From Blastocladiella emersonii ATCC 22665 (taxonomy: Eukaryota; Fungi; Blastocladiomycota): 64,000 bases of DNA. The DNA is taken from positions 496,001-560,000 of the forward strand of contig JANHCV010000013.1 in NCBI GenBank assembly GCA_025594325.1, given 5' to 3'. Position numbers and translations under genes: made by a program. This document shows, piece by piece, positions 17,918 through 38,439 of the stretch. Position 1 is the stretch's first letter. Every line of letters begins with the position of its first letter. The notes under the pieces were generated by a model. It searched no databases, had not been told where the DNA came from, and saw only the letters and a list, made by a program, of their open reading frames with translations.

Positions 17918-17994
17918 GCGTTTGGGTGAGTTGATGAAGAAGAATACATGTAATACGCTAGATGTTACAACCACAGGTTGGTGGTGATCCAAAA

Positions 17995-20374
17995 TCAAGG
18001 CGAGCGGCTGCCAAAGATCCGTTGCATGTGCGCCTCGTGGCTGCGGCGGTCGGTTCGCGCGATAAGCTTCTGCTGGATGTTCTCTACGGTTTGAGAGAAG
18101 CCAGGCTGGCTCGTGGCGATGGGAGCGACGCGCTTGAGCTGCGTGACGAGCGGCCCGGCATACGAGGTCGTAACGAGTTGGCCGAGCTCATAGCAAGTGG
18201 CAACGCCGCCGTCAAAGATGCCCGCGGGCAGGAGCTCGATCACCTCGTCCACTACGTCACGGTTGCGCTTGAGGAAGAGGAACATCGACCGCGGATCCGC
18301 GCGGGCGACCGACCCATACACGTGCTGGAGCGGCCCATTCGGGACCAGCTTGGCACAGCAATTGTTGCCGCACTCGTCATCCCGGAGCTCCTTGAACAGG
18401 CCGACAAATTCACCCGTGATCAAGGCCGATTCCTCGTAGTATCGGTTTTCGTAAGCGGAAAGCGCGGTGGGGAAGCGGGCGAGCAGGGCAGTGAGTGGGC
18501 ACTCGGAGCAGAGCTGGAGCTCTGTAGTGTAGTAGGAGCAGGGGTGTTGCTCGTCGACGCTGGCCCAGAGGATTGCGCCGAGAAAGTACGGCGCCGAGCC
18601 CGTCTCGGCCAGGATATCGAGAGCACGAGTTCGCGTGCTTGGAGCGGCAAGCGCGGCAACGGCGATAAGCGCCGTCCAGGTCGTGACCTCGGTCAGGTCG
18701 ACCACTTCGGCGCCGTTCATGCTCAAGGCTCGAGCGATGATTGAGAGGAGGTCGAGCGCGTCGATGAAAAGCCGCCAGTTGGGCAAGTTTTCGAGTGACT
18801 TGGCCATCGAGCTGCTGCGCGCGAGAATCTGAGCGAATTCCACGGTCAAGTCGCTTGAAGCAGTCTGGCGCGCGAGCCAGATCACGCCTGCGAGTCCCGC
18901 ATATTCAAGTGAAGTTTTGAAGGCTGTACGCGGTGTCAGTCGGGATCGGGGCAACACAACACGTAACATATCTAGAATGGCGCGTACCAGCGAGGAGGAG
19001 CTCGTCCCATTGTTCAGGGGCGACGCGGCTACGCGCAAAATCGACCGCCCAGTGCGAGTAGAACAACTCAAAGATCGGGCCCTCCAAGGCCGAGACCACG
19101 AACTCGCACCAGTCAGGGAACGCGAGGTCGAGGGCGCCGCTGCAGCTCAACAGATTCGTCAGCTCGGCCTGCTTGATTCGCCCGTCGCGAACCCAGCGCA
19201 TGACCGTACCCCTCAAGGCCTTCTTGTCCTCGACCGTGTGGCCAACCAAGACAACACTCGCGTGGTTCGTCACGGATCGAGCCAGTGCGCCGGACCCAAG
19301 GATCGAGATGATACGAACAAGGGAGGCCTTGTCGTTGTTGTAAGAATTGGCGTTCCACCCGTCCGGGACCGTCCAGCTGTTGCTGAGAAGCCAATCAAGA
19401 ACGCGGGCGGCGCGCGCCCACTTGGCCACCATTTCATTGGTTTTGGGCACATTTTAAAAGTTTGCCAGACTCTTGATCCGGCCCACGATAAGCGACGCCA
19501 GTTCGTTTTGAGAGGCAAACGCGACAAGTGGAGCCAAGCCGCAGCCTGACTTGCAAACAGCCCGAAGGAGGTCATCGTTCAAGCCAAGGAAGGCCAAAAC
19601 ACCAAGGAAATCAACCAGCCGAAGCGTTGTTTGTGAAACGTTGCCGCTGAGGCCCGACGTGCTCGGCCGCATGTCGTGAGGGCATAGGAACATCCACTGC
19701 CACCAGGGCAGCGCCAAGCTCAAGACCTGCGGCGTCGCGCGAGCCATTTCGGTCACCAGGGACTCGAACAGGGCGGGCAAAGGAGCCGCGGCCGCTTCGA
19801 TAATGACGCGAAAGAAGGGGTCAAGCGGCTCCTGCAAAACTTTTGTTAGACTCGGTGGGGTCACAGGCATGTCCCAAACAGGCGGTACGCAAAGTGGCAC
19901 AAGATCGGTAGCCGACTTGCCGAGCGCAAACGCGGCCAGCCGGTCCCCGCCGACGCAGGACGCAAACGCGCGAAGAAGAATGTGCCGATTATCGGGCGCC
20001 GCTTGCGTGACGGTTTGATCCAGCGGGCGGTGTATCAAATAGGGATAAGTTGGCATCGCGGAATGGTAGCTGGTTTATGCAGAGGCATAGCTTGGTCGAA
20101 TGGAAAAAGCCTGGTTCATGCTCGCATAGCCATATGAGCCCCTGGTTGCTCCGTAGTCAAGAGTGGGGACGGAAGGGATACCCGAGCGAGGGAGGCGATA
20201 GTAGCAAGGATAGGTCCAGAAGCTGAGAGTGCGAGGCTCGCGGACAGCCGAGGCAAGCAGGCCCGAGCAAGCCGGCACGCAATCTCGAGAGTCGGCGAGC
20301 CGTGAGACTTCGGCGAGCACCTCGGCAGGCAGGTCGCCTAGACCAAGGGTTGCATGTTGCATCGAGTCGTTCAT
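17995..20374 (-). pseudogene. Family A copy A2, disabled
   Basis: Frame is preserved but there are in-frame TAA codons at 20077-20075 and 19456-19454. The conserved intron is 18987-18924 (WDELLLA-A-FKTSLE). A 10-codon in-frame deletion removes xYQQPWRDAL (CSECPL|TALLARFP). Confidence 0.75.
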
Positions 20375-21204
20375 TGGTTACTGCTGCATGGGTGCTGCTT
20401 GCGAGGGAGAGGGTGGAGCCAGGCGCGGAGCGAGCGAAAAGGTGCGAGCGGCAAGCCCGCGCGCATCACGCCGCGGGTCACATGATAACTCGACGCGTCT
20501 CCCACAGGCGCAGTGACGCTCGCCGTGAAGCAGCGCTTGGCTCCTACTCGATCGAAAATCGCGTGCTGAAAATCTCCACGCCGATCGACCGTACTCGGTC
20601 GCGTCTATGGACGAACATGCTCAGACAGACGAGAACGAGGGGAGATCGACTTCTCACTGTGTTTCTGATCGGAGTTTACGTCACTTTGCTTGCACAATAA
20701 TCACCGCGATAATGGCCAGAGACCCGTAAAGCTTGGCCGACACCCATCACGTGTGGAGCAGCCTCAAGCCTGTCGGCCATCACTTCGAGATATCCGCACT
20801 TCCACGAGGCCGAGATGGAAGAAATAAGCGCGAATACGAAGCAAACGTGCTCAGAAATACAAAACATCGAAATGCTTCCTGGCCCGGAATCATTGCTTCG
20901 CTTTTAATTGGCACGCCTCGAAACAGCCGCAGGGGATTGATCTCTGAAATCTGTCACTACCGCAAGATTCAACCTTCCAAACGGTGATTGAACTCGATGA
21001 ATCCACAACCTGCAGCTGGAGGCCACCTCGCTCAGCCCACGCACCAACAACGCGTGTTCAACACAGCCCGTGGCGTGCGAGTCGCCCATCACCTTGCTCT
21101 TCTTTCAGAGTTGAGAGCTCCATCGCTGAGCCCTTCCTGGAGGGCTAAATGAAGTTGCTCTCTACACCCATTTTCACTTCCGATGAGACAGTCAGCGACC
21201 AGAA

Positions 21205-21860
21205 CGCGACTAAACCGCGACTAAAACGCGACTAAACCGCGACTGAACCGCGACTGAACTGCAACTAAACCTCGACTGAACCGCGACTGAACCTCGACTA
21301 AACCGCGACAGAACCATGGACAAACCAAGACCAAACCGTGACTGAACCTCGACTAAACCTCGACTAAACTCAGACTAAACTCAGACTAAACCTCGACTAA
21401 ACTCAGACTAAACCGTGACTGAACCATGACTGAACCACGAGTAAACCTAGAGTAAACCTAGAGTATATCTAAACTCAACATCGACCGAAGACAGAGTAAA
21501 CCTAGAGCAAACCAGAGCAGAATTCTATTCGACTTGAGTCAGACTATGAGCAGACCCTGAAACTTCCACATCAACCCCAAAGTAGACTCAGACTGAACGC
21601 AAAGTAAACTCAGACTAAACTAAAACTAAACTGAAATTAAATCCGAGCAAAAGCAGATCAGACCCGGACCAAACGCAGACTAAACTGAAACCAAAACCAG
21701 ACTAAACGCAGACCAAACGCAAACTAGACTCGGACTAAACGCAAACTAGACTCAGACCAGACTGAAATTGAATGAAGCCAGCGCCGAGACAACTCGGAGC
21801 AAACCTGAATAAGACCTGAGTGGACTGAAAGCAGACTGAAAGCAGACTTGGACCAAAACC
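21205..21860 (+). repeat. Left subterminal tandem array, 11-bp unit ACCGCGACTAA, degenerating inward
   Basis: Repeated GACTAAAC/GACTGAAC/CAGACTAAAC at about 11-bp spacing. Confidence 0.9.
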
Positions 21861-21889
21861 AGACCAGAACGCGACCAGACAGTCTGCTC

Positions 21890-22530
21890 CCATTTCACTT
21901 ATTTCACTCCCCTGCTTAATAACTCCCAAAGCACAACTCAGGAGACCTCCATGGCCTGTCGCGTAGTAGTAGATTCCGTCGAGAAAATACGCGCTATCGC
22001 AAGGGTTGGGCACCTGAGGTCAGCTACGCGCCACAAGGCCAGCCTGCCTACACCCCATGTATCTCACTGCCCTGCTTAATAACGCCCAACGCACAGCTCA
22101 GAAGACCTTTATGAACTTACGCGTAGTATTATATTCCATTGCGAAATTATTTGATATCGCAAAGGGAAAGGCACGCAATGTCAGCTGCGTGCCACAAGCA
22201 CGATTTGCCCTTTCCCCCCATATTTCACTCTCCTTCTTAACACCACCCAACTCTCTTCTCAGGAGCCTTAAAAAGCACTGGAGTTAGTAGTAGATTCCGC
22301 TCAGAAGTTACGCGATGTCGCAAAGGGGTGAGCACGCAAGGTTAGTTACGCGTCACAAGGCCGTCCCGCTCAGACCCCACTTATTTCTCTTTCTTGCTTG
22401 GTGTCGTACAACTCACAGCTCAGAGAATCTCTAAAGCCTTGCGAGAAGTAGTAGATTCCGCCGAGAGGTCGCGCGATAACGCAAAGGGGTGAGCACGCGA
22501 GGTTAGGTACGCGACGCGGGCCAGGCTGGC
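21890..22530 (+). repeat. About four degenerate tandem copies of a 160-161 bp unit
   Basis: The anchor GTAGTAGATTCC-like motif ends at 21977, 22137, 22298 and 22459. Also shared: CGCAA(A)GGG, CTGCTTAATAAC, CACAGCTCAG. Confidence 0.8.
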
Positions 22531-23354
22531 TTGCCACGCTGCGAATATCGATGGACCACTCGAGCGCAAGGCTTCGGCAGCATGCTTGGCAACCCAGTAA
22601 GAGCGCGCCCGAGTGTCCATCACGTATCCTTAGACGAATTGTTTGAGCTGACCATGAGCGACCAAACGTGCAAGGGTGCAGTCAAGTCTGCGCTCAGCGG
22701 CGTGCCCATAAAGTAGTTGCCTGGCCCATTTCACTGCGCGGAATTGGCCAAGCTCACTGAAAAGCCGTGAGGGCGCGATCTACGGGGACCGTGGCAGCGC
22801 GCCACGAGCCCCGCTCCTTGCAAGGGCAGCAACAAAAGGCGAGTCGTGGTCGTGCTTCAGGTTGGGCACCACTTGTTGCAAGAACTCAAGACGATGACCT
22901 TCCTCTCAAGCCATCGTTTGGGCTGCCGCGGCGGTGACTTTACCCGCTACGTGCACGCCAACAACGCTGCCCCACAGTGTGGCGACGGGTCGGGGCGTTC
23001 GGGGCGTGGGACCGCTCTCCGCGGCGTAAAGGTCTGTGCCAACGGCCCATAAACAGATTGCATCAAGTCACATGGGCATAAGATTCATGAGAACAGGTAT
23101 TCATGGATGTCCGCGGTCGCTTGGAGGAGCGGGGCAGGGAGCGGGGCTCGGCGCTCGTTTCGTTTCAGCCGCCGGCTCGGCCGCGTGCACTTGAGCCACG
23201 CGCGGGACACGGCGTGCCGACCTCGACCCCGGCGTCGCTCCCAAACACCGCATCTCGCGGCCCGCTCACTCCGTGCATCGGCGTAACCATCTCAATAGCA
23301 GCTCGCTTGGCCGTCCCACCCGCCGCTCCCTTCGCTCTGTCCGACTTCCCTGCC

Positions 23355-24484
23355 ATGTCTCAGAACAAGCATCTGCTGCGCCTGCAACTCGCGGCATGTA
23401 ACATGGTCTTGAACAATGGAATGTCGGTGCGCGAGGTCGGAAACAAACTTCTCTGCAGCCACTCTACGATTTCGCGCTGGGTGGTCGCTTACAGGGCGGG
23501 TGGAGTCGCTGCGTTTGAGCCCGTCCCGCGTCCGCCGCGCGAAACCAAGCTCGACGCCGACGACGATGAGGTGCGTCGCGCTCCACAAGGTATCCGCCGC
23601 GTCGGGCACGGTGCTCATCTTCAACCCGCGCTCCTGCCCCTGCAATCTAGTTTGTGCGCGTTTCCATCACCAGCACCCCGTGGCTCACCCTACGCGACAT
23701 TTCCGAGCTGCTGCGCGCGGAGCGCATCAAGTCGGTCTCCGTGTCGACGCTTTTGAGGCTTCTCGACCGCCTTGGCTTCTCGAAGACGGTGGTCAAGTTG
23801 CGCGGCGCCAACTACAACGAGGAGGCGCGCGCCGCCTGGCGCCAGTACGTCGAAACCGCTGGCTTCAGGGCCGACCAGCTTGTCTTCTGCGACGAGTGCG
23901 GCATCCAGCCGACAGCGGCCAACCACCGCTTCGCGTGGAGCGAGACAGGGGTCCCCGCCGTCATTGTGCAGCCGCGCGCGCCCACGAGCACGCGTGTCAA
24001 CCTCGTTGCAGCCATTTCCACGTTGAGGCCCCTCCTCGCGCACGCCGCGCCGTACAGCATCAACATGGAGACATTTTGGACCATCATTCGCGACGACCTG
24101 GTACGTTGCGTCGATCTTGTGCTCCGACCCCATCCACTTCACGCGTCTCGCCTACACCTCTCGTTCCTGTAGATCCCGCACATGAATCCTTATCCCGAGC
24201 CGTGCTCAATCCTCGTTCTCAACAACGCTTCGTTCCACCACTCGCACAGACACATTGCCGAACTCGAGCGCGAGTTTGGCATCGCGGTACGCTTCCTTCC
24301 GCCGTACTCGCCCAACATGAATCCCATCGAAAACACTTTCAGCACATTCAAGGCTTCGCTCATCAGCCACCCGATCACGGGCCTGGACAAGGACGATCTC
24401 CCGCACGCGTACGCGGAGCGCTACTTTGACTGCATCACGCCAGCTTCGAGCGCTCGCTACGTCGCTCATGCCGGCTACAATTGA
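23355..24484 (+). CDS. IS630/Tc1/mariner-superfamily transposase, about 325 aa, 3 exons, probably inactivated
   Basis: Exons 23355-23570, 23651-24100 and 24173-24484 (GTGCGT..CTAG, GTACGT..TGTAG). HTH region SVREVG..CSHSTISRWV, second HTH LTLRDI..VSVSTLLR. DDE-domain motifs LVFCDECG, LVLNNASFH, FLPPYSPNMNPIE. Confidence 0.9.
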
Positions 24485-24546
24485 GTCGAGTCGGATACGG
24501 TGAACTCGTTGTGTATATGGGATAGGACGGGGGAGGGTATAGGAGA

Positions 24547-24595
24547 TACATCACATCACATCACATCACATCACCATCACCATCACCATCACCAT
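24547..24595 (+). repeat. Compound microsatellite (ACATC)n(ACCATC)n
   Basis: Read directly; the opposite strand encodes the DGDGDGDVM C-terminus of the convergent gene. Confidence 0.85.
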
Positions 24596-27339
24596 CGTCA
24601 GAATCGTCAACGACGGCCGTCACACGAGCCCGACCGTGACCCTGCGGTGGACCCGCAGGCGGCGGCGGGAGACCCATGCCGAACATCTGCGCCGCGATCG
24701 GCATACCAAAGTTGGCTGACGCGTTGGCCGGCGCGTTGCGGCGGTGCTGCTCGGTCGGCTGCATCGGCATCGGAGCAGCTGGTAAAGGAAGCGTCGCGTA
24801 CACGGAGGGACCGGGAAATTGGACGAAGCGGGCGGGATACGCAGCGTGGCCCATGGCGGCCATCATGCCGCCGACGATCTGGCCAGCAAAGCGCCTGAGT
24901 TGCTCGTTAACTGCCGCCCCAATATTGTTGGACTCGCCCTAGTCGTGCGATGCGGCGCGTTCTGGGTCAGGTTGCTGGCGGTACATGCGCACGCTCAGAG
25001 TCGCGCGTACCTTGTGATATCTGCGTCGAGGGCTGCGCAAGCGGGACCGTGTACGCGAACGCGAGCGGCGGTCACGGCGACGTGGGCGCGGGCGCGAGCG
25101 TGAGCGTGATCGAGATCGGGAACGGTGGTCACGGCTACGTGAGTGCGAGCGAGGCCGGGAACTCGACGACGCGTATGAAGAGCGGTTGTCAGCACGCGTT
25201 GGGACACTCGGCTGCGGCGGTGGACGAGGCCGCGGCAAAGGGGAGCGGCCGCGCGCGTGCGAAGGGCGGTCGCGCGAGCTGGAGCGGGAACGAGCCCGCG
25301 ACGACGATGCCGATGGCTCGCCTGAGCGCGAGCGGCGGTCGCGCGTCGGTTCGGCTACGTCCAAGCGAGCCGATGGGGTCGGCGTTGGACGAGCGGGAGC
25401 CGCAGTCGCACTCGGCGGCGGAGCAGCAGGTACAGCGACGCGGTCCATGGTCGGCGGATCGGCGAGCACGGCGGCGCGGTTCGTGGTCGGGTGTTGGTCG
25501 TGGTACAAGCGCTCCATCGACTCCTACATGCTGGCCCGGGCCTGCGCCATGAAGTCCTCGTTCAGCTGCTCGGCGAGGCCGTTGTCGGGATCGTCGAGCG
25601 AGTGCAGCGGCGAGTCCTCGCGTCGGTCGAGCGTGCGAGAGCTGGCGGTCCGCGTCGCGAGTCGGATCGCGGGATCGTCGCCCGGCAGCGGCAGCGGCAG
25701 CGGCCGCGGCGGTACGAGCGGCGCGGGCGTATCGCGCGGATCGAGTGGATCAGCACGACCGCGAGTACCTGCAGAACTACCAGCGAGCGACGCGGCCGAC
25801 CCGCCGAAGCGACCCGGAGCGGCGGCACGGGTAGTCGTAGCGCTGGCCTGCGACTCAGCGATGAGCGTGTGCGGGGCAGAGCGCGGCGAGGCGGCAGCAG
25901 ACGCGGCTGCAGCTGCGGCCACGGCGCGCGCGCTCGGGACGATGGTCTAGAATCAGGGAGCGTGCGCAAGGTCAGTGCAAGTCGGCGAGTATCACACGCA
26001 CGGCAAACGTACGTCACGCGCGGGCCGAGGGCCAGCGCGAACATGACCATGCCGCCCATCCGTCGCTGCGCCAAGCGGCGGCGCACGAGCGCTGGCGGTC
26101 GGCGGCTCGCTGCGCGACGGAAAGACGACCTGCGGCGCCGCCACCGCGGTCGCACGCGCACACAGCTTGTTCAAGCAGTCCGTGTCGACAATGATGGTTG
26201 GCACCTTGTTCGTGTTGACGGCCGCCTGCACCATGAGCTTGAGCATGTCCTTGTTGACAAGCGCAAAGGTGTTGGCGGGGTCGTAGGCCTCGGGCTTCTT
26301 GGACTTTCGAGACGAGGTGGGGAACGTGTAACGGAGCGGCGCCTTGGCCACACACGAGTAGCTGCAGGCGCAGAGCGTGTCGTCGAGCGTGGTGTTGAAC
26401 GTATCCCACACGTTGGCAGCCCCCGCCATTTTGATGAGCATCTGCGCGTTCATGGGGCAGTTGTTTTTGCAGCGGCCGTTGATCTTGAGGTTGGCCTCGA
26501 GGGTCTTCAAAGAAGACGACGGCGACGCGGACGTGGTCGACGCAGACGCGGTTGGCGCGGGCGACCGCAGGGCCGGCGGCTTGCGCGACGACGTTGGACC
26601 AGGAATACGGCGAGTAGCAAGCTGGCGGCTCGAGCTTGCGCGCGCGGGCTTGTCAAGCTGCTCGTACTCGTCGTGGTCGTGGTCATCATCTCCATCGCTC
26701 GCCTCCTCACCACGGTCAGCGCCAGCGCCAGCGTCGCTTTCCAGCTCCGAAAGCGTCGACTCGCCGTCGTTGTCGTCGACAGGGTGATGGAGGGCGGGCG
26801 CTGTAGATGCGCCGAGTGGAACCGAGGACGAACTAGACTCGCGGCGCACGAGAGGGAGTGAGTCGTCACGAAGACAGGGTGGTGCGCCAGCGAGTCTGCG
26901 TACCAAGCAGCTGAGTACTCCTTGTCGCACGTTGAGCACATGTTCACGGCGACCTTGCTTGGACTAATGATGCCGAACACCGTGTCGAGGTGCTTGAACA
27001 GCGTGGTACCGTTGGGTTTCAACTTGAGAAAAGCGCGAGCACCGGCCGGCATCGTCTCGAGAGTGCCGGGCCAAAATTCAATGGCTACGCGCGGAAGCAA
27101 GGGGCAAGCGCGTTAGTTGCAGCGCGACGGCGGCCAAGCTGGATGCACGTACTCTTCTGCCCAGGCGGCGGAAGCAGCATACCGCTGCAGAAAGGATCGC
27201 GGCAGTCCCCGTGGCCGCCCATGAGGCAGATGCCGCAGCTGAAGCAGCCAGTGGGGCCAACTCGAAGCGTCTTTTTCGAGCGCCGGACGTTCATGGCGAG
27301 CACCGCAGCGGGTAGGTCGTCAAGTTCGTACGTCGGCAT
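24561..27339 (-). pseudogene. Five-exon cargo gene, about 833 codons, one in-frame TAG; Cys-rich N-terminus, acidic tract, globular core, RS-rich region
   Basis: Exons 27339-27153, 27084-26904, 26832-26013, 25946-25011 and 24938-24561. All four introns (66-72 nt) start GTACG, end TAG and are phase-compatible. TAG at 25526-25524 (ASM*ESMERL). Confidence 0.72.
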
Positions 27340-28586
27340 GGCGGAGGGTGGCCTGCCGTTCCAGCGCCGACACGCGACGGACAGCAGAGGAGGGGGAGGA
27401 GGAAGGGCGAGGACGGCGGTGACTCGGCGCGCGGGTTGGGTTGCTGGAGGTGTGGGTGGTGCGGTCGCGACACGGCGGCCGAGAGTGGTGGTTGAGCAGG
27501 AGCAGGAGCAGGCGCTGCTCGAATGCGGGAGAGAGGACGGGCAGCGGAGGTCGGAGGTCGAAGTGGAGCCAAGCCGCGGGCGAGCGGAAGGCCGTGGCGG
27601 TGGCTGTGCGCGCGCGTCGCCTCAGCGTGGGCGGGCATTTTCAGCTCGCCGCGCCGCCCGAAAGCGCGCCGCCACACGCAAAGCAGGGGACCAAGGACAA
27701 CAATGCATCGAGTGGGCAACGGGATTTATTCATGTGGTGGGATTTTTGAGTGGCCCGAACAGTCAAGGGCGCCCAAGTCGAGGTGGCGCGGCGCCTTGCG
27801 GGATCCGATCGCGCGCGCCCACCCTCACTGTCGCGTGATTCCGCGGCGCCAAGCGCTTCCCCTTACAAAACAACAGAGGGTTGCTCCATCGCCGGGGATC
27901 AATCAGCAGGGGTGATGGAAATCGGGGTGAAAGGAGTGCAGCAGGCGCCTTCGACGCGACGCGTCTCGTTTCACTGTTGGCTGTGGCATCGCGGCCGATG
28001 CGGCCATGGCCACCGACGCACGGGACGACGCGAAGATCGGCGCCAGCTTTGTCCAGCACTGATCAAGACGGTGATGCCAGGTCGGACTCGAGGGCGTGTG
28101 TAAGGTCGGCAATGCAAGGGGTGCGCGGGGAAGTGGAGCGCGCTTGCAGGGCTTCTCGCCGAGCCCCCTCCCTCCCTCCCTCATCGCCGAAATGGCTCCC
28201 GCGACCCGAGGCCTGGCGTCGGCCCTCTGGCGTCAGGTCGGCGGCGGTCCCAGCCAAACCGGCGTCGGACCTGACGCCAGGTGCGACGCGAAGGTCATGG
28301 CTCGGCGTCACGAGGGTCCCTGCTCCCCGCCACCTACCACGTCCGCCATGAACCATGAATTTTATGCCTCGGCAACTTGATGCAACATGTTTATGGTTTA
28401 TGGGCAATCGCTTGAGACTTTGACGCGGTGAAGAGAGGCTTTGCGCTTCGACTCGTGTTTGACCCGTGAGACCGCATCGCTCGCGTGCGCGAACTTCGCG
28501 CAAAGTCACCGCCGCGGTAGTTGAGAGAACGAGATCATGTATTTCGACCAGCGGCGCACGCCACGCGCCGCAGCTCGTTTTCGTTG

Positions 28587-29250
28587 TTAGTTCTTTAAGG
28601 GATGGCGCTCGCTACGCGCCGCCGCCGCAGGACCCGACTGGGTCCCCTGCACCACCACCTCAAGCAGGTCGCGCTCCCACAGGTACGCCATGAGCGCGGC
28701 TGACCCCGCGCAGTCGAACGGGATGAGCAGCCACTCCCGGTACTCGATGTCGAGCTTGAAGTTGCCTGCGCCCCAACTCGTCAGCGCCGCGGGCCAATCG
28801 GAGTTGGGCACGACGTGAACGAACGTCTGGAAGGCCGCCACGCTCACGGCGTGGTACCGACCGAGGCCCATACCCGGCTCCGCGGGATGCAGGGCGAGCG
28901 CCTGTACGGGAATGTCCTTGTACGTCACCGTGCTGCCCGGCGCGTCGTTCTGGACGCGGAACTGCTCGACGATGGCCACTTTGTGCTCGGTGCCGTTGTG
29001 CGTGAAGTGCAGCGCGGCGGCCGGCTTCCCGACGCGGTACTTCTTGTCCGACGTGAGATAATACCGTACGCGAGATAATAGCAGATGTTAGCGACTGAAC
29101 GATTTGGGTATGAGCACACAGCAGGCGGCGAACCATGACCCAGTTCGTGTGCGCCTTGCCACGGATTGGGAACTTGCACTTGCCTGTGAGCTGCTCGTTG
29201 CGGAATCCGCCGAGCGAAAAGGCCTCGAACGAGATCGCCTTGGACATGGA
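28587..29250 (-). pseudogene. Small cargo gene resembling the C-terminal domain of Plavaka/CMC-type transposases
   Basis: ...HTNWVM|YYLTSDKKYRVGKPAAALHFTHNGTEHKVAIVEQF...HAVSVAAFQTFVHVVP. The intron has a GTTCGC donor and GCTAAC branch, but the expected acceptor reads GTACGG instead of GTACAG. The family resemblance is from memory of the motif pattern only. Confidence 0.4.
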
Positions 29251-30339
29251 GAAGTACACGTGTCGCGGGGCGTGAGCGTCAGTTTCTTGTGCTTGTGATA
29301 CAAATCGCGCGCACACGGGGGTACCTTGACGTCGTCGGGACCCAGCATCGGGTTGTCGGCCGCTCGCTGCGCCGAGAGTCCGGAACCCACTTGTGCGCTG
29401 CTCCCAGAATGCGGTCGTTCATGAGCTCAAGCGGATGCTCGAACAACGCCCGAGAATCAGTGCGAACATCCAGTCGGCGCTGATGCGCGGATCAACGTTC
29501 AGTTGAGCTCCTGGCGCGTGGAAATCTCGAGCTCGACGGGTGACGACATTGAGTTCAGGACCCTGTAAGGGCAATCACACGGATTCGACATCTCCAGGGA
29601 CGGTATAAGTAGAGCTCGACACTTTGAGTCGGTTGCATAGAGTCAGTGGATGGGTTTACATGGTGCGTCGAGCGGTGAGGGAGGCGAGGGACGCGAAGGT
29701 CACGCCACGTGACGCGTTCGACTTTCGCCGATCGCTCTTGAGCGTGTGCGTTGGGCGCGGATGGCTGCGGCTCCCGCCGAACCGCCAAGTCCTCAGCTCA
29801 CTCCTCTATCACCATGCACACGACGCATCCACCCCCTCCGCATCGCGTGCGGCTCTCGTCTGTCTGTCGCCCGCGCCGCGGCGGCGCCCGTGTCATGCGG
29901 TCGCCTTCGCCGCCTCGCTCGCCATGCCCGAGTCGTGTCCGCGGCCTCCAAGCTCGCCTAAGACAACGGCCCGACCCCCACGACGTGCTCGGGACCACCA
30001 AGGAGGCGTACGTCGCCGCTGCGGCGGTGCATCCGCGTTGTGCTGAGTCGCCGCGAGCGCGCGTATTCCGTCGACTCATCTGCCCCACTTTCGCCCTTCC
30101 CTTCGACACCCTTCGCCCTCGCCACGCGCGGGACCGCTGCCGATCGTCCTCCGCGTTGGATTGGCTCGGCTCCGCCCGTCATCACCCCTTATCACTCTCC
30201 GCCTTGAACATTTCGTTCGAACCACGCTGACCCGTGTCTTTTCCCACCTCAGTAGTCCGGATCTCCGCCCACCGAGCGCTCGTGCTGAGCCGTGCCAAGC
30301 GCGCCTCGTGTGACACGCGATCGGCCGTCTCGGCGACGC

Positions 30340-31137
30340 GTCCATGGCCACGCAGCGGACTCGACCGGGCTGTTCGACAAGGGCCTCGCCAAGCGCGTGC
30401 ACGGCCGAGTTCGGCAGGGTGTGCGCGTGTATCGCCGAGGCTACGGTGCGACCCGCTTTCTGACGCGTCCTCGGTGGTGTAGCGACCACGTTCCTCGCCG
30501 TTGTGATTAAGGCCGCCAAGCTGCTCCGCAATGCGGTACGCTTTCTCACTCGCTGTGGGCGTTTGCGCCGCCCGGACCTCGTGGCCGTCGTCGCCCGCGT
30601 GCCCGTGGTGCCGTCAAGGCCGAGATCGGCTCGACCACCGACTGCATTGCCATGGTCACCAAGGACGCGTCTGCAACGTCAACCACGGCCCCGACCATGA
30701 CCATTGACTCTGACGTGCTGTTCCTCGGCCTCGCCAAGGCGATCAAGGTCAAGTACCGCGTGATTGAGGGCAACTTTGGTCACGGTGCGTTCCCGACCTG
30801 GTTTGCTGCAATGGACGCGCACCTTGAGCACCTTGCTGACGCACACGCACCTCCCGCTGCAGATCAAGCTGTCGGGCGCTGGCGCCAAGATCGACAAGTT
30901 CCTCGACTCGCTGTCGTGCGCGGACAAGTGGGACTGAGCGACCATGACCTCGCAGTACGTCTCTCACGCACGATCATCTCCCCCGCCCGGCTTTGCTGAC
31001 TCCGCGTCCCTCACCACCAGGGCGACGGCTGTCGGCGGCGCACAAGTCCAAGTTCGATCTGCTGCGACGGCCGGCGACCACAGCCGTCGCCAGCGTCAAG
31101 TTGGAGATCAAGTCGCTCAACATCAAGGAGTGGTAGC
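30340..31137 (+). pseudogene. Degenerate multi-exon cargo gene of unknown function
   Basis: Segments with coding-like codon usage (DSDVLFLGLAKAIKVKYRV; IKLSGAGAKIDKFLDSLSCADKWD; RRLSAAHKSKFDLL...LEIKSLNIKEW*) are separated by GTGCGT/GTACGT..CAG intron-like stretches, but the phases do not reconcile. Confidence 0.35.
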
Positions 31138-31624
31138 GGCGGCGGTGGTGGCCACGGACGAGCTCGGGCCGCGAGCGCCGGACTGGCGCGGCGGTGGCCG
31201 CGCGTGGCGGCGTACTATGATTATTCTAGCGCTTTTATTCGAATGGGTCTATTGAAATACCTATCAGAAGAAGCACGTGATTCATCATTGAGGCGCATCG
31301 CGTCCCGCTCCGCTGACCCCAACGCGACCTCTTAGGAAGGAGTGGCGTAGCACATTGCCCGTGTCTGTGCGCGCTCCAAGTCCTGACTCCGCCTCACATC
31401 GCCCGTAAACTCTTGCGCAACCCCACATGGCCGGGAGCTGTGGTGGCAACTGAGAGCAGCGCTAGCGGTGGGGAGCTTGGGTTCCCGCGCGTATGGTTAC
31501 GCAATTCATGTTCGCATCGTGTAACCGTGGGTGGTTACAAGCCATTACCTCAAGGATCATTAAGCAGGAAAGAGAAAAATATGGAGTTCACGATGTGCCG
31601 TCTGGTCGTGGTTTGATTGTGGAC

Positions 31625-32341
31625 TGCTGCAGGTTCAGTCGCGGTTCAGTCGCTGTTCAGTCGCGTTCAATCACGGTTTACTCCGAGTTCAGTCGCTGTT
31701 CAGTCGCGGTTCAGTCACGGTTTAGTCGAGGTTTAGTCGAGGTTTAGTCGAGGTTCAGTCGAGGTTCAGTCGAGGTTCAGTCGCGGTTCAGTCGAGGTTC
31801 AGTCGCGGTTCAGTCGCGGTTTAGTCGCGGTTTAGTCGCGGTTTAGTCGCGGTTTAGTCGCGGTTTAGTCGCGGTTTAGTCGCGGTTTAGTCGCGGTTTA
31901 GTCGCGGTTTAGTCGCGGTTTAGTCGCGGTTTAGTCGCGGTTTAGTCGCGGTTCAGTCAAGGTTTGGTCGCGGTTTACTCCGAGTTCAGTCTGAGTTTAG
32001 TCGCGGTTTAGTCGCGGTTTAGTCGCGGTTTAGTCGCGGTTTAGTCGCGGTTTAGTCGCGGTTTAGTCGCGGTTTAGTCGCGGTTTAGTCGCGGTTTAGT
32101 CGCGGTTTAGTCGCGGTTTAGTCGCGGTTCAGTCAAGGTTTGGTCGCGGTTTACTCCGAGTTCAGTCTGAGTTCAGTCGAGGTTTAGTTGAGGTTCAGTC
32201 ACGGTTTAATCAAGATTTTGTTGAGGTTTAGTCAAGGTTCAGTCGAGGTTTAGTCGCAGTTCAATTGAAGTTTAGTCAGGGTCTGATCCGAGTCTGATGC
32301 GGGTTTGGTCCGAGTCTAGTCAGGGTTTACTCATGGGTTTA
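31625..32341 (-). repeat. Right subterminal tandem array (TTAGTCGCGGT)n, inverted relative to the left array
   Basis: Long perfect runs at about 31810-31950 and 31997-32130. A variant block recurs at 31951 and 32127, giving a 176-bp (16 x 11) higher-order repeat. Confidence 0.92.
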
Positions 32342-32523
32342 GTCGCTGACTGTCTCATCGGAAGTGAAAATGGGTGTATCAGGTCGGACGTCACAACGCC
32401 GCTCACATGAAATCCAGACGTGCGTTTGGGCTCAGTCGATTTGTCGCGAGTTCGCGAGTTGGGAGACAAAAACGTTGAGAATGTGTGTATCGAGGTTGGT
32501 AGCGAACACAAAAGAAAAATACT

Positions 32524-34837
32524 CTAGAATCGGTCATTCGTTCGGGTCAACTTATTCTTGAGGCGATGCTCAACAACGTTCAGTGCTTGAGTAAAGCCCG
32601 GGTCCGAAGTCGCGACGGGAGCAAGCCGCTTCAAGTCGCGGATGACGGAGTCCCGATCCGAATGTATGTAAGTGAGCTGGGCAAGATCGTAAGCGGAGGC
32701 TACACCGTCAAAGATGGCCTCGGGCAGGTAGCTCGTAATGTAGCGAGCAGCTCCCGGGTGGCGCTTGATGAGCTGGAACATGGACTGCGGGTCAGCTCGC
32801 GCAAGTGTATCAAGGAAGGCACGCAACGGCCCATTCGGGGCCGACTTGGCGCAGCAATTATTTGAGAGCTCGAGCCGCGCCGCCTGCTGCACGCGGGACC
32901 AATGCTCGGACGTCACCTTCGCCGACTTCTGGTAAAAGCGGTTGTCGTATGCCGACAAAGCGGCCGGGAACCGCGATAAGAGAACAGCGAGCGCGTCGCG
33001 CCACGGTTGCTGGTACACAAGCGGACACTTGTCGCAAAACTCGAGCTCGGGCGCCACGTCCAAGCACGGCTCACGGTCCGAAATGCTGGTGTGAAGCATG
33101 GCACCGAGAAAGTACGGTGCCGTACCCGTGCTGGCAATTATTTCGAGCGCGCGATCTCGGGTGGCGGAAGCCGCGAGCGCCACGACCACAATCCAAGACG
33201 TCCACTTGGAGAGCGAGCTTAGGTCTGCGCCCTCCGTGCCAAGCATTCCGACCGTTTGCGCCGTGATTGAGAGAACGTCGAGCGTATCCGCAAAGAGATC
33301 CCAGTTAAGCAGCCTTTCAAGCGAGTCGGCGACTTTCTCGCTGAGAGCGAGCGTTTCGGCGAACTGCGGGACAAAGTCATGCGAGCTGGTATCCCGGGCC
33401 AACCACACGACGCCATGAATGGCAGAATTTTCGAGCGAGTTTTTGAAGGCTACACGTCGCAAATCGGGCCATGGGTCAGACTCGCGTCCTTGTCAATCCA
33501 ACAAATCCCGTCAGTACGAACCATGGCCGAGAACTTCGTCCCAAAGCTCTTCATCAACCCGTTCGTAAGCAAAATCGGCGCCCCAGTCCGGGACAGCATG
33601 ATCGCGATTCGGCGTTAAAAACGAGGAAACGACCACATCACTCCAGTCCTCGACAGTAAGCTCGAGTGCGCCAGCGTCAAGAAACGTAGCAAATTCGGCC
33701 TCAGTAATCCGGGAAAAGGTAAGCCAGACGCGTGTTTCGGCGAAAAGGTACCGTTTCTGTTGGGCGTCCTGTCCCGCGAGGCTTTGCTGCGGGTGATTTT
33801 TCAAAGCGCGCGCAAGAGGCGTTGGTCCGAGCGCAGAAATCGTCGTGGCAAGCGAACGAGATTCTTGCCACGAGTTGGTCCAGCCGTGGTCAAGGAGCCA
33901 GTTGAAGACTCGAGCCGCGCTCGCCTTGCGCGCAGCAACTGCGCTCGTGTCGGCCAGTTTGCCCGGGGTTCGACGGCTCTGCGCATGGTTCATAATGGCT
34001 CCTACAGGGGGCTTGAATGAGGCGCACTTGGTGAGCGATGGCGTATCAAGACCAGAAGCCAGCACGGCCTGAAGAAGGTCGTCTTCGAGCGAGATGACGG
34101 CGTAAACGCCAAGAAAGTCGATAAAGCGCAGAGGGAACTCTCCCATTGACCCGCGATCGTCGTCCGTGAGTTGTACACCCTGAATAGTACGCCATTCAAG
34201 CCACTTGTGCGTGATAGTTAGCACCTGCGGCAATTTGCTTGACACGTCGGCGATCAGGTACTTGAGAAGCGAGGCACGAGAGGTCACGACCGCCTCAATC
34301 AGGACGCGAAGGAAAGGAACGAGGGGTTCTCGCATGAGGCGCGTCACGGTTATTTTGAGCGGCAACGCGCCGTCATTCGCAAGAATGCAATTCGAGAGCT
34401 GTTCGGTGGACTTGCCTGCAACAAACTCTGCAAGCCGGTCACCGCCGATGCAGGCAACGTAGGAACGAAGTAGGGCGTCCCGTCTCGGTGACGGCTACAC
34501 CGTTGGACCGCTGTTTAGCGAATACATCGATCACGGTATGAACTGTTCGGGTACGTACATCCTTGAGCGACGCTGCCGTTGATACGGCGAAATGGGCAGC
34601 CCGACGGCCATAGGGCTGAGGTGCGCGAGCAGGCGGAAACAGAAGCGGGTGAACCCATGCGATAAGGGCTCGCGGTTCACGGATGGCCGTCGCAAGCGCG
34701 ACCGATGCAAGCGGAACGGCGGGCCGCGGCTGGCAAATTTGGACGACTCGTTCAAGAAGCGGCGAGGGTAGGCGCTCGAGCGTGAGTCCCACTGGGCCTG
34801 CACGTTGCAACAAGTTGGCTTTCGTTTTCTTCTTCAT
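32524..34837 (-). CDS. Family A copy A3, about 725 aa, 3 exons
   Basis: Exons 34837-34559, 34494-33522 and 33449-32524. Introns are GTACGT..GTGTAG (64 nt) and GTTCGT..GTGTAG (72 nt). Motifs LTLERLPSPLL, CDKCPLVYQQPWRDAL, NNCCA. Confidence 0.78.
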
Positions 34838-35133
34838 TCGATTACATTCGCCTGCGCGGTGGGAGCTGGTGTGAAGCCGCTCGCGGCGCAAAGGGACACC
34901 CGATCGCCGCTGTGGCGCGTCACGTTCGGTCACATGAATGTCCGTCGCGTGTTTTGAGAGACAGCGGAGACATCTGAGGGACCTTGTTCGTCCTTCATTC
35001 TGAACGTTACATCAAGTATGATATTAATATAAATTCAAACAACAGAAAAGCCGATATCCAAAGCAAACAATTTAATTTTGGGAGTCCGCCGCGTCTGCAA
35101 GCGGCTTGCAACCGCGAGCTGATATGTATCAGT

Positions 35134-37393
35134 TCACTCAGCATTAAACAATGAACCATTGAGGCGCCGCTCGAGCACAGCCAACGCGTGATCAAAGGCA
35201 GAATCATTAGTTGCGACCGGCGCGAGGCGCTTGAGGGAACAAATCAGGCTCGCTCGGTCATCGCGTGTGAACGTGAGCTCGGCAAGCTCATAGATCGAGG
35301 CCACACCACCATCAAAGATGGCCGCAGGCAGGAGGCCGACTAAGCCGTTTACGACTCCCCGGTTCCGCTTCAAGAATTGAAACATGGAGCGGGGGTCGGC
35401 TCGAGCGATCGCAGCGAGAGTGTTGGCAAATGGGCTGTCACTGCCTGAGGACTTGGCGCAGCATGTGTTGCTGAGTTCGTGCTTTGAAGCGTCGTCCAAG
35501 GACCGAGTAAGGATGCCCGCGGCATGGTTTTTTGTTGGGAAAAACTTGTTGTCGTACTCGTTGAGAGCAGTCGGAAAGCGGGCAAGGAGTGCGCCAAGTG
35601 CGTCACGCCACGGTTGCTGGTACGAAAGCGGGCATTTCTCGCAGATTTCGAGCCCAGGCGCGTAGTCCGTGCACGGCTCGTGGTCTTCGAGGGCAGCCCA
35701 AAGCATAGCGCCAAGAAAATACGGGGCTGTGCTGGTCGCGGCCAGGACGTCAAGTGCCTGAGCGCGCGTCGAAGGAGCAGCAAGTGTAACAACGGCGATC
35801 CATGAGGTCCATTTCGGAGGGACGGAACTCAAGTTGACCGTCTCGGCGCCAAGCAAGCCAATGGTCCTGCACACGATCGTCATGATATCAAGCAGATCCG
35901 CAATAAGATCCCAATCAAGCAGGCTGACAAGCGAGCTGGAGACGTTAATGCTGGCTGCGAGGATCTCTACGAATCGAGGCATCATGTCACGCGCGCTGGT
36001 TTGCCGAGCAAGCTTCACCATGCTCTGTACAGCAGCATTCGTATGCGAGAGTCGAAACGCTAGCGAGGGCACCGCACAGTGAGTGTCAGAAAGAATGAGC
36101 CGCAAGTAAGCAACTTCCGCGGACCGTACCTTCAACGAGGACGTCATCCCACAACGCAGTTTCGACCCGAGCACGCGCAAAACTCGCTCCCCAATCCAGC
36201 TCCATGTTGTGGATCGAGTTGAAGAATGAAGTGACAATGACATCGGCCCAATTCTGAACTGACATCTCAAATGCTCCGTGATCGACAAGTGCCGCAAGCT
36301 CGGACTCGGAAACAAACCCAAGCAAGAGCATCTTCCGAATGTTCAGAAAAAGTGCCTGTTTTTGCCGGCCGGTGTGGTTCTCAAGCATCTTTGTTGGGTA
36401 TTGGATGAGAATGCGCGAGAGGGCCTTTGGCCCAAGGAAGGCGACAATATTTGCCAAGGAGCGATCTTGGTTCGAGCTACTGTTCCAGCCGTTGCCAAGA
36501 AGCCAATCAAGGACGCGAGTCGCGCTGGCCCGCCGATTCACGACTTTGATTGCATCACCCGCGTCAGGAAATCCAATGCGCGCGATCCTGAGACGAGCCG
36601 CGTTTGCCGCTGGGTTGAGCGACGCGAAAGCAACCGCCGAGTTCAAGCTGCGACCAAGCTTAAGAATAGGCTGCAGGAGCTCGTCTTGCATGCGAAGAAT
36701 TGCAAAGGCGCAGAGGCAGTTGGTCAGATCAAGTGAGGACCGACCCAGCGCTTCGAGATCTTGTTCTGACAATCGCAAATCGCTTTTCACAGAGGGTGAG
36801 AGCAAATCCAACCACTTGCAAAAGGGAAGCGTGAGCTCATGTAGCCCAGGGGCCATATTGAGCAAGTCGTCGACCAAGGCGTTAAAGAGCGTTGGGCGCC
36901 CTGTTGCAACGGCTTCGAGAAGGACAATCAAGAGAGGTGCGAGCGGCTCTCGAAGGGCGCGGAACGTCCGAAAGTTGGTTGACGTGTCGTAGCCTCGCGT
37001 AGTCATAAATACCAACAGCTGCTCGGCGGACTTGCCAGAAATAAACGCCGCAAGTCGATCTCCGCCAAAACACGACACAAATGAACGGAGCAGGGCATCC
37101 CGCTTGAGTGACGGTGTCTGGACCAAGGGTAGTGCTGTATAGGATGCGAGCAGTCGTGCCCGGCCAGTTAACCTCAATCTGTAGAGGTGCGGAAGGACAT
37201 TGGGAAGCGTCCATAGGACGAGAGCTCGCGGCCCCCGAACAGCCGTCGTGAGAAGGCTCGAAGAAGCCGGGACGACGTGTCGGGCACAACAAAGCTGCAC
37301 GACAAGTTCGAGAACTGGCAAAGACAGCTCTGCGAGCCCGAGAGGTGCTTGGCGAACACGTTGCATGGAGTTATTTGCTTGCATTTGCTTCAT
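35134..37393 (-). CDS. Family A copy A4, about 729 aa, 2 exons
   Basis: Exons 37393-36130 and 36059-35134, with intron GTACGG..CTGAC..CTAG giving WDDVLVE-A-FRLSH. Motifs LGLAELSLPVL, CEKCPLSYQQPWRDAL, NTCCA. Confidence 0.82.
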
Positions 37394-38439
37394 GGTTACT
37401 TGCGTCGAGGAGAGCCCGTGAATTCAGCGCGACGGCAGGGGGACTTAGCCCCCCTGGCGACGGTCAAGCTCGAGGCGACCGGCAACGGGGTCAGCTGAGA
37501 TCAGCTGATGCGCGAAGCAAAAGGCGACGCGACCGCGAGCACCAGAACGCCGCGCTTTCTCCACCCCAACGTACTCGATGTCCGCACCCTGAAACCACGG
37601 AAGCGAATGAAATTCGCGATCCCGGAACTTATAGAGCGAGTGCTTGTCTACGCCATGCAGCTGCACAACGATCCGACCGACGTCGCGGGCCTCATGCAGT
37701 CCGCGCGGGTGCTGTGCGAGGCGCTGATTCCCGGCGTCGCGCACGCGATTCTTACACGGTCACCCGAGCTGACCATGGACGCAGCAAGCGCTCGTGGCGC
37801 CGTTGGCGTGATTCAGAAGTGGCGCATGTCCGGCCTGCCACTCTTCTACTCGTTCAATGCCTTCAAGGATGCACACGAATCTTCGCTTGAAACCATCGAG
37901 TGGTGGGGGCGGTCCGGTCTTCCGATCCGTGACCCGAGCTTCCCAAACAGCTCGACCATTGACTTGTTTGATCGATGCTATGGCGTTTCGTTCACGTCCA
38001 TTTTCTTTCCTGGTTACGTACAACGGTGAGCCGGTAACAAAAGCGACGCCCACCCATGCTTATGCAACCTTCGTTCATCTAGACTCCAATCCAGCGACGC
38101 TCTTACGTCCCCAAAGATGTGGTTTGCCAAACGATTTCTAAGGCTATCGTTGGTATCAGCTTTGGCAGCTTGACCAAGGTCGTACTCTACAACCAACATA
38201 TCTCTCTTGCTGCCGTTGACGCACTAAACGACGCCATGGCGAGCCGGGTGCAGGCTCCTCGCTTGTTCAAACTAGTCAGCTGCGCAATTGACCTCCCTCG
38301 CTTCTCGCTGCTCCGATTTCCGCCTTTGCTCACCCACCTCGAGTGCGCTTCTGGATGGAGTTCGCAATGGATTGACGAAGAGCTCTTTGAGTCGTGGTCG
38401 TGGCCACAGTCACTCAAATCCTTCTCCATTTCTGGGCGC

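Follow-up and report, generated by a model that had tools for sequence, protein, structure and literature searches.

A probable IS630/Tc1-type transposon family with long arrays of 11-bp repeats at its ends in Blastocladiella emersonii

Transposons of the IS630/Tc1 group are, in textbook accounts, small single-gene elements, and those that have been studied transpose less efficiently as their size grows. Tc1-like elements of the IR/DR type, such as Sleeping Beauty, carry two sites at each end within approximately 230 bp. EnSpm/CACTA elements are large, with several genes, CAC...GTG termini and arrays of subterminal motifs that usually occur in both orientations. The ciliate Tec/TBE elements (Euplotes, Oxytricha) use a transposase of the same superfamily as IS630/Tc1 and carry long inverted ends and extra open reading frames (ORFs), with TA as the target in the case of Tec; they are not known to have 11-bp arrays. 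Among fungi, the IS630/Tc1 elements Tc1-OP1 (Ogataea polymorpha) and Tc1-MP1 (Mucor piriformis) measure 1.7–5.7 kb and have terminal inverted repeats (TIRs) of 141–169 bp, and the only cargo-bearing relative described, Tn630-NC1, consists of two IS630 copies that bracket four genes in a bacterium (PMC11544213). For Allomyces macrogynus, the sole representative of the Blastocladiomycota in a 2017 survey of fungi, that survey reported few if any DNA transposons (PMC5751038). Here we analyze a 64-kb stretch of the genome of Blastocladiella emersonii ATCC 22665 (assembly GCA_025594325.1, contig JANHCV010000013.1, matched at 100% identity), hereafter called the window, in which an earlier note had proposed a very large IS630/Tc1-type transposon that carries unrelated genes. 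The element, of 11.2 kb, is indeed large for this group, and we found no description of it, or of any transposon in B. emersonii, in the literature. We consider it likely that it represents a new, architecturally unusual IS630/Tc1 cut-and-paste family, whose structurally most complete copy is catalytically disabled and mobilisable in trans, and we do not read it as a carrier of host genes.

The limits of the element are sharp, as the earlier note had described. A 35-mer that begins with CACCCATTTTCAC is present at exactly two places in the 64-kb window, without mismatches and with 0 occurrences expected by chance, and it is adjoined by TA at both outer sides (Table 1). The termini of the element read CAC...GTG (CACCC...GGGTG). 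Insertion between tandem paralogues, also proposed in that note, is borne out by the flanks, which are collinear paralogous coding DNA (approximately 18064–20420 versus 32560–34790 and 35161–37530). We found no further copies or fragments of the element inside the 64-kb window, and no internal TIR copies within the element, which holds one transposase gene only. A search of the whole window against Rfam gave no match. We note that GenBank has no gene model for the tandem 'family A' paralogues at 17918–21160 and 32400–37530 where locus L002 covers them. In addition, an 8.3-kb read contig tracks the left flank and diverges at window position 21125, 39 bp before the insertion; the sequence that it carries beyond this point is similar, paralogue-like, absent from the window and not an empty site, and the contig probably stems from a collapsed paralogue within the gene family that flanks the element.

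Two paralogous, truncated transposase models pointed to two other copies of the element, L001 and L003, which lie at unlinked loci and carry the same TIRs, TA at both flanks and the transposase in the same position. All six ends carry the same 35-bp TIR, and TA is found on both sides in three of three copies. Among the copies found, the ends are always paired and accompanied by the transposase gene. L001 and L003 lack the same two segments (Table 1), and the deletion junctions carry 2–4 bp of microhomology. Because both deletions are shared by copies at two unlinked TA sites, a deletion derivative has itself been mobilised. Each of the two copies later gained a private insertion. In L003, a 3.24-kb PIF/Harbinger-type element (L003 4711–7949), with the TIR GGGCCCGTTTGGTTC, a TAA duplication and a gene (L003 5023–6110) that encodes a Myb_DNA-bind_3 domain, lies as a secondary insertion within the left 11-bp array, and in L001 a 1,040-bp insertion (L001 14237–15276) with TG...CA ends and a CCGT duplication looks like a solo long terminal repeat.

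The genomic copies were complemented by read evidence, in the form of Logan contigs from three runs of the same strain. These contigs recover both L001 junctions, one further insertion flank, without a match among the loci that we retrieved, and a third deletion form in which position 24446 is joined to 30994. Word depth over the unique parts of the element is only approximately 1.2–1.5 times that of the flank, and copy number is therefore low.

Table 1. Features of the element, its copies and their divergence. Positions are those of the window, except for copies L001 and L003, which are given in the coordinates of their own loci.
Feature	Position	Strand	Size or value	Remarks
Window copy	21165–32376		11,212 bp	contig suffix 013.1
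Copy L001	7745–16451		8,707 bp	contig suffix 005.1
Copy L003	4453–15540		11,088 bp	contig suffix 008.1
Left TA target-site duplication copy	21163–21164
Left terminal inverted repeat	21165–21199	+	35 bp	begins CACCC
Left subterminal array	21200–21860	+	~48 recognisable units of 11 bp	core GACTRAAC
Tandem repeats of 160–161 bp	21841–22500	+	four repeats, ~0.65 kb
IS630/Tc1-type transposase gene	23355–24484	+	325 aa	three exons
First segment missing from L001 and L003	24054–26535			includes exon 3 of the transposase and the bulk of the P0002 gene
Orphan spliced gene H9P43_009017 (P0002)	25524–27339	-	411 aa
Second segment missing from L001 and L003	27726–28693			takes one terminus of the nested element
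Nested element, from a distinct 4.0-kb TIR transposon family	28182–31345	-		truncated at one end
GenBank gene model P0157	28587–29348	-		inside nested element
GenBank gene model	29895–31136	+		inside nested element
Right subterminal array	31625–32341	-	~64 units of 11 bp	inverted relative to left array
Right terminal inverted repeat	32342–32376	-	35 bp
Right TA target-site duplication copy	32377–32378
Divergence, window versus L003	21750–23000		~3%
Divergence, window versus L003	23000–24053		0.4%
Divergence, window versus L003	26536–27725		~3%
Divergence, window versus L003	28694–30750		~9%	nested segment
Divergence, window versus L003	30750–31640		~1%

The intron-containing transposase that had been assigned to the IS630/Tc1 type is confirmed as such by its domains. 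Its exons (23355–23570, 23651–24100 and 24173–24484) are separated by GT-AG introns of 80 and 72 bp and give a stop-free product. The first splice, which joins DDDE to FVR, matches the GenBank models of both sister copies, and the predicted second splice is backed by a gap-free alignment with relatives. Pfam searches matched HTH_28, HTH_29 and HTH_32 in exon 1, HTH_33 and the start of DDE_3 in exon 2, and the remainder of DDE_3 in exon 3. The helix-turn-helix (HTH) matches of exons 1 and 2 correspond to the N-terminal bipartite HTH of the IS630-Tc1-mariner superfamily, whose further hallmarks, namely an RNase-H-like DDE/D domain, TA duplication and TIRs, are all present. NCBIfam NF033545 (IS630 family transposase) was matched collinearly at profile positions 3–61, 79–211 and 219–285 of 299; the exons, scored separately, reached 34.9, 53.0 and 45.9 bits, each below the 100-bit cut-off, with a simple sum of 133.8 bits. 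When aligned with 15 relatives, FCDECG, VLNNASFH and NPIEN fall on the D, D and E catalytic columns, and 34 residues lie between the second and third catalytic residues of the spliced product (DD34E). The Tc3-type HTH of Tc1 proper (Pfam HTH_Tnp_Tc3_2) gave no match at E ≤ 0.1, and no mariner or pogo domain (Transposase_1 DD34D; DDE_1 with a CENP-B-type domain) was matched, DDE_3 being the only one found.

An exhaustive search of 1.8 billion representative proteins returned only 350 at E = 0.001 or better. The best relative outside the species is 33% identical (E = 5e-12), and those relatives that bear a name comprise IS630 transposases from bacteria and 'Tc1-like' proteins from Basidiomycota. 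A sequence search of the PDB with exons 2 and 3 had Sleeping Beauty (5cr4) as its sole match, which was non-significant. Around the transposase we found chance-level short inverted matches only and no private TIR pair, in agreement with the earlier note. Its suggestion that the gene belongs to the element also stands, at least in the sense that gene and element have travelled together, as three unlinked copies share TIRs, TA and gene position. We note that the transposase gene is unannotated in GenBank for the window copy, while its truncated L001 and L003 versions are annotated (H9P43_005235, H9P43_006950). A microsatellite, (ACATC)n to (CACCAT)n, follows shortly after the stop codon (window 24548–24592), and read contigs break there.

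In the window copy, Asn replaces the second catalytic Asp (codon 24221–24223), and the conserved Asp of the SPDxNPIE motif is also Asn (24314–24316); both changes are G-to-A at CpG. Because of the Asn at the second catalytic position, the window copy is probably not autonomous, and would depend on transposase from another copy. A variant read contig over 23996–24441 differs from the window copy at 11 positions, among them 24221 A>G and 24314 A>G, both of which replace Asn by the conserved Asp (VIDNASFH, SPDMNPIE). When comparing window and L003, the transposase differs at 1 of 619 nt, which is too few for a selection test; for window versus L001 the ratio is about 1.5, which, with a stop codon in L001, would indicate neutral decay.

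Divergence between the window copy and L003 changes along the element (Table 1), and this mosaic, from 0.4% to approximately 9%, points to gene conversion plus point decay. Many of the between-copy transitions lie at CpG. The transposase exons differ by 0.2–2% between copies, and the nested segment 28694–30750 by approximately 9% (window versus L001/L003), a higher divergence that suggests either conversion with other 4-kb elements (the family described below) as donors, or faster CpG decay of a more-repeated sequence.

The ends continue inwards from the TIRs as long arrays, and the 650–720 bp of inverted 11-bp arrays reported from the first inspection were recovered with Tandem Repeats Finder as period-11 arrays of opposite orientation, at 21205–21458 (23 copies, with decayed units to approximately 21850) and at 31632–32261 (57 copies, with decayed units to 32328). 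Each end thus holds 0.65–0.72 kb of array, and both ends together 1.4 kb. Once cut into register, the 11-bp units show a core GACTRAAC(C) of 8–9 bp that is kept and a spacer of 2–3 bp (positions 10–11) that varies. Among 176 core matches in the six ends, none is in reverse orientation, and all share one polarity relative to the terminus. Because of the conserved core, the variable spacer, the helical period and the strict polarity, we infer that the arrays are additional putative transposase-binding sites. The inverted echo of the 160-bp repeats claimed for the right end amounts to no more than a 16–18-bp motif (31559–31577).

In the reading that we favor, a 325-aa transposase with two N-terminal HTH domains and a DD34E RNase-H-like domain would recognise the 35-bp TIRs and probably also the 11-bp arrays (approximately 50–65 units per end, one helical turn apart and of the same polarity). 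It would excise the element and reinsert it at TA, which would be duplicated. That this transposase mobilises these ends is suggested by their co-occurrence in all copies. Four components account for the size of the element, namely the arrays (1.4 kb), the 160-bp repeats (0.65 kb), a nested transposon of 3.2 kb and the 3.7 kb that include P0002; the nested transposon, truncated and characterised by CATCG termini and 2-bp duplications, would have entered before the family spread, and then been carried along.

Several points weigh against this reading. We saw neither transposition nor an excision footprint, and an empty site for the window insertion was not found, the joined flanks having no DNA-level match in the window. 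No copy was recovered with a demonstrably complete canonical transposase, since L001 and L003 are devoid of exon 3 and the window copy carries Asn, and the Asp-bearing variant contig may derive from the form in which the final 12 transposase codons are missing. The second intron and the expression of the transposase are predictions made from sequence, and gene conversion appears to have blurred the history of the copies. Furthermore, the CAC...GTG termini, the hundreds of bp of short subterminal repeats, the size and the several genes all resemble the habit of EnSpm/CACTA elements. Finally, the fungal ESTA and PHISTA lineages also make TA duplications (PMC12730594), and TA alone is thus no proof of an IS630/Tc1 mechanism.

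It is from these resemblances that the best-surviving alternative arises, in which the element is a non-autonomous EnSpm-like ESTA or Harbinger-like PHISTA element that is moved by a transposase encoded elsewhere, and the IS630-like gene has long been a mere passenger, left over from a nested IS630/Tc1 element whose own ends have been lost. We regard this as unlikely. It would account for an IS630-like gene that is catalytically mutated in the window copy and truncated in two copies, and remains of another transposon are demonstrably present in the element. Its CA..TG-type termini, which are found across the EnSpm-related clade, and its TA duplication agree with the terminus pattern of the EnSpm/CACTA-Plavaka-ESTA group, which includes a 2–5-bp duplication (PMC12730594). 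However, the IS630-like gene is constant in position in every copy, without relic TIRs, and a variant with canonical catalytic residues exists. The motifs here have a single orientation, whereas those of EnSpm elements usually have both. Among the ORFs scanned in the most complete copy, none gave a signal for a transposase of EnSpm, Plavaka, Harbinger or RAG1-like type, but this is weak evidence, since ESTA transposases may escape Pfam and, in the paper that describes them (PMC12730594), only HHpred recognised them.

Much of the right half of the element is a nested segment of foreign origin, which was already aboard when the three copies diverged from one another. This segment ends sharply in CATCGCCGAAAYGG at window 28182, with adjoining CTGACGCCAG motifs, and lacks the last ~200 bp of its far end. 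The 4.0-kb family to which it belongs is found at at least eight loci besides the window, seven of which (L004–L010) are collinear with window 28181–31333 at 78–86% identity. The CATCGCCGAAAYGG terminus is common to five other loci, and the outside flanks are unrelated at each. Complete copies lie at L009 7710–11719 (4,010 bp) and L010 7760–11767 (4,008 bp), where CATCGCCGAAAYGG serves as TIR and 2-bp duplications, GC and GG, are present. Neither the CACCC TIR nor the IS630-like gene was found at any of the seven loci (10 kb on each side). One of the two gene models in the nested segment, P0157, has at least nine paralogues of 63–87% identity on seven contigs; its family gave no Pfam or NCBIfam match and nothing reliable from Atlas as to function.

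The nested family, with CATCG...CGATG termini and 2-bp duplications, fits the PlavakaB pattern, described in 2025 as CATCA..TGATG termini with a 2–3-bp duplication (PMC12730594). We could not confirm the earlier note's idea of a 'Plavaka C-terminal domain', as the Plavaka transposase domain PF18759 was matched neither in the window segment nor in a 3.8-kb copy in L007. As seen here, the 4.0-kb family is non-autonomous, and it is PlavakaB-like by its termini alone. We observed that the family (CATCGCCGAAACGG termini; L009, L010 and L004–L008) comprises two subfamilies that differ in a palindromic subterminal motif, of the TTTGCGCAAA and CTGGCGTCAG types, and that its content is annotated in GenBank as many different 'hypothetical proteins' (P0157–P0166). 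At one of these loci (L004 13323–18523), four minus-strand genes occur in a run that includes a Pox_A32-type packaging ATPase, and may be a Polinton-like or virus-like insertion.

These results bear on the cargo of two or three unrelated genes that had been attributed to the element. Three GenBank models do lie inside it, but two of them are in the nested truncated transposon, and what remains is P0002, the sole possible true cargo or accessory gene. P0002 has a Cys-rich N-terminus, an acidic tract and a C-terminal domain that resembles unnamed Basidiomycota protein clusters (Atlas), and its codon-position GC pattern is coding-like. It is single-copy, belongs to no Pfam or NCBIfam family, and has no paralogue or homologue among 5.8 billion clustered proteins. 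The AlphaFold models made for P0002 and the P0157 family were unusable (mean pLDDT of 36.7 and 35.2). Since L001 and L003 moved without most of its gene, P0002 is dispensable for the movement and spread of the element.

We therefore find it improbable that the element is a gene-carrying transposon with captured functional host genes, and a vehicle for host gene duplication. The three models are spliced, and P0002, with its coding-like composition and its likeness to Basidiomycota clusters, has no detectable transposon affiliation. However, the other two models form part of a truncated transposon family present at no fewer than eight other loci, P0002 is without homologue and hence has no known donor host gene, and the two deletion copies spread without most of it. 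That the element is not a transposon, and reflects chance, a segmental-duplication artefact or an assembly error, is barely conceivable: only the general risk in repeat-rich assemblies speaks for it, against three copies on three contigs with different flanks and exact TA duplications, and independent short-read contigs that reproduce both L001 junctions and one further flank.

Beyond the reading as a new IS630/Tc1 family, a broader one can be put forward tentatively. It is possible, although doubtful, that the family stands for an IS630/Tc1 lineage that is undescribed, branches deeply and belongs to early-diverging fungi. Its ends would have evolved CACTA-like, helically phased arrays of approximately 50–65 transposase-binding sites each, and such multivalent ends would allow a small Tc1-type enzyme to synapse and move payloads of more than 10 kb, including another transposon and P0002 as an accessory gene specific to the element. 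The element adds a defined DNA-transposon family to the Blastocladiomycota. For annotation, three GenBank 'hypothetical protein' genes within it are to be regarded as transposon content. As a natural family of 8.7–11.2 kb, of which at least deletion derivatives have moved, and with dozens of phased short repeats per end, it would offer a useful case for relating end architecture to cargo capacity. It should be of interest to transposon specialists.

Compared with the described systems, the Blastocladiella element shares with fungal and bacterial IS630/Tc1 transposons the TA duplication, the TIRs and a single DDE_3-type transposase with N-terminal HTH and DD34E. It departs from the published fungal members in its 11.2 kb, its 35-bp TIRs, its 0.65–0.72-kb arrays of 11-bp units and its two introns. 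Like Tn630, it combines IS630-family machinery with extra DNA, but its single transposase gene and single pair of ends make it a unit transposon and not a composite one. The ciliate Tec/TBE elements belong to a different host kingdom, and the likeness to them is one of transposase superfamily and architecture. With EnSpm/CACTA, Plavaka and ESTA elements it has in common CA..TG-type termini, arrays of short motifs, a size of at least 10 kb and several genes, as well as TA in the case of ESTA; it differs from them in that its only recognisable transposase is of IS630/Tc1 type and its motifs are strictly in one orientation. Finally, as in IR/DR elements such as Sleeping Beauty, a Tc1-type transposase goes together with multiple putative binding sites at each end, inside a long inverted structure, but here each end holds dozens of putative 11-bp sites.

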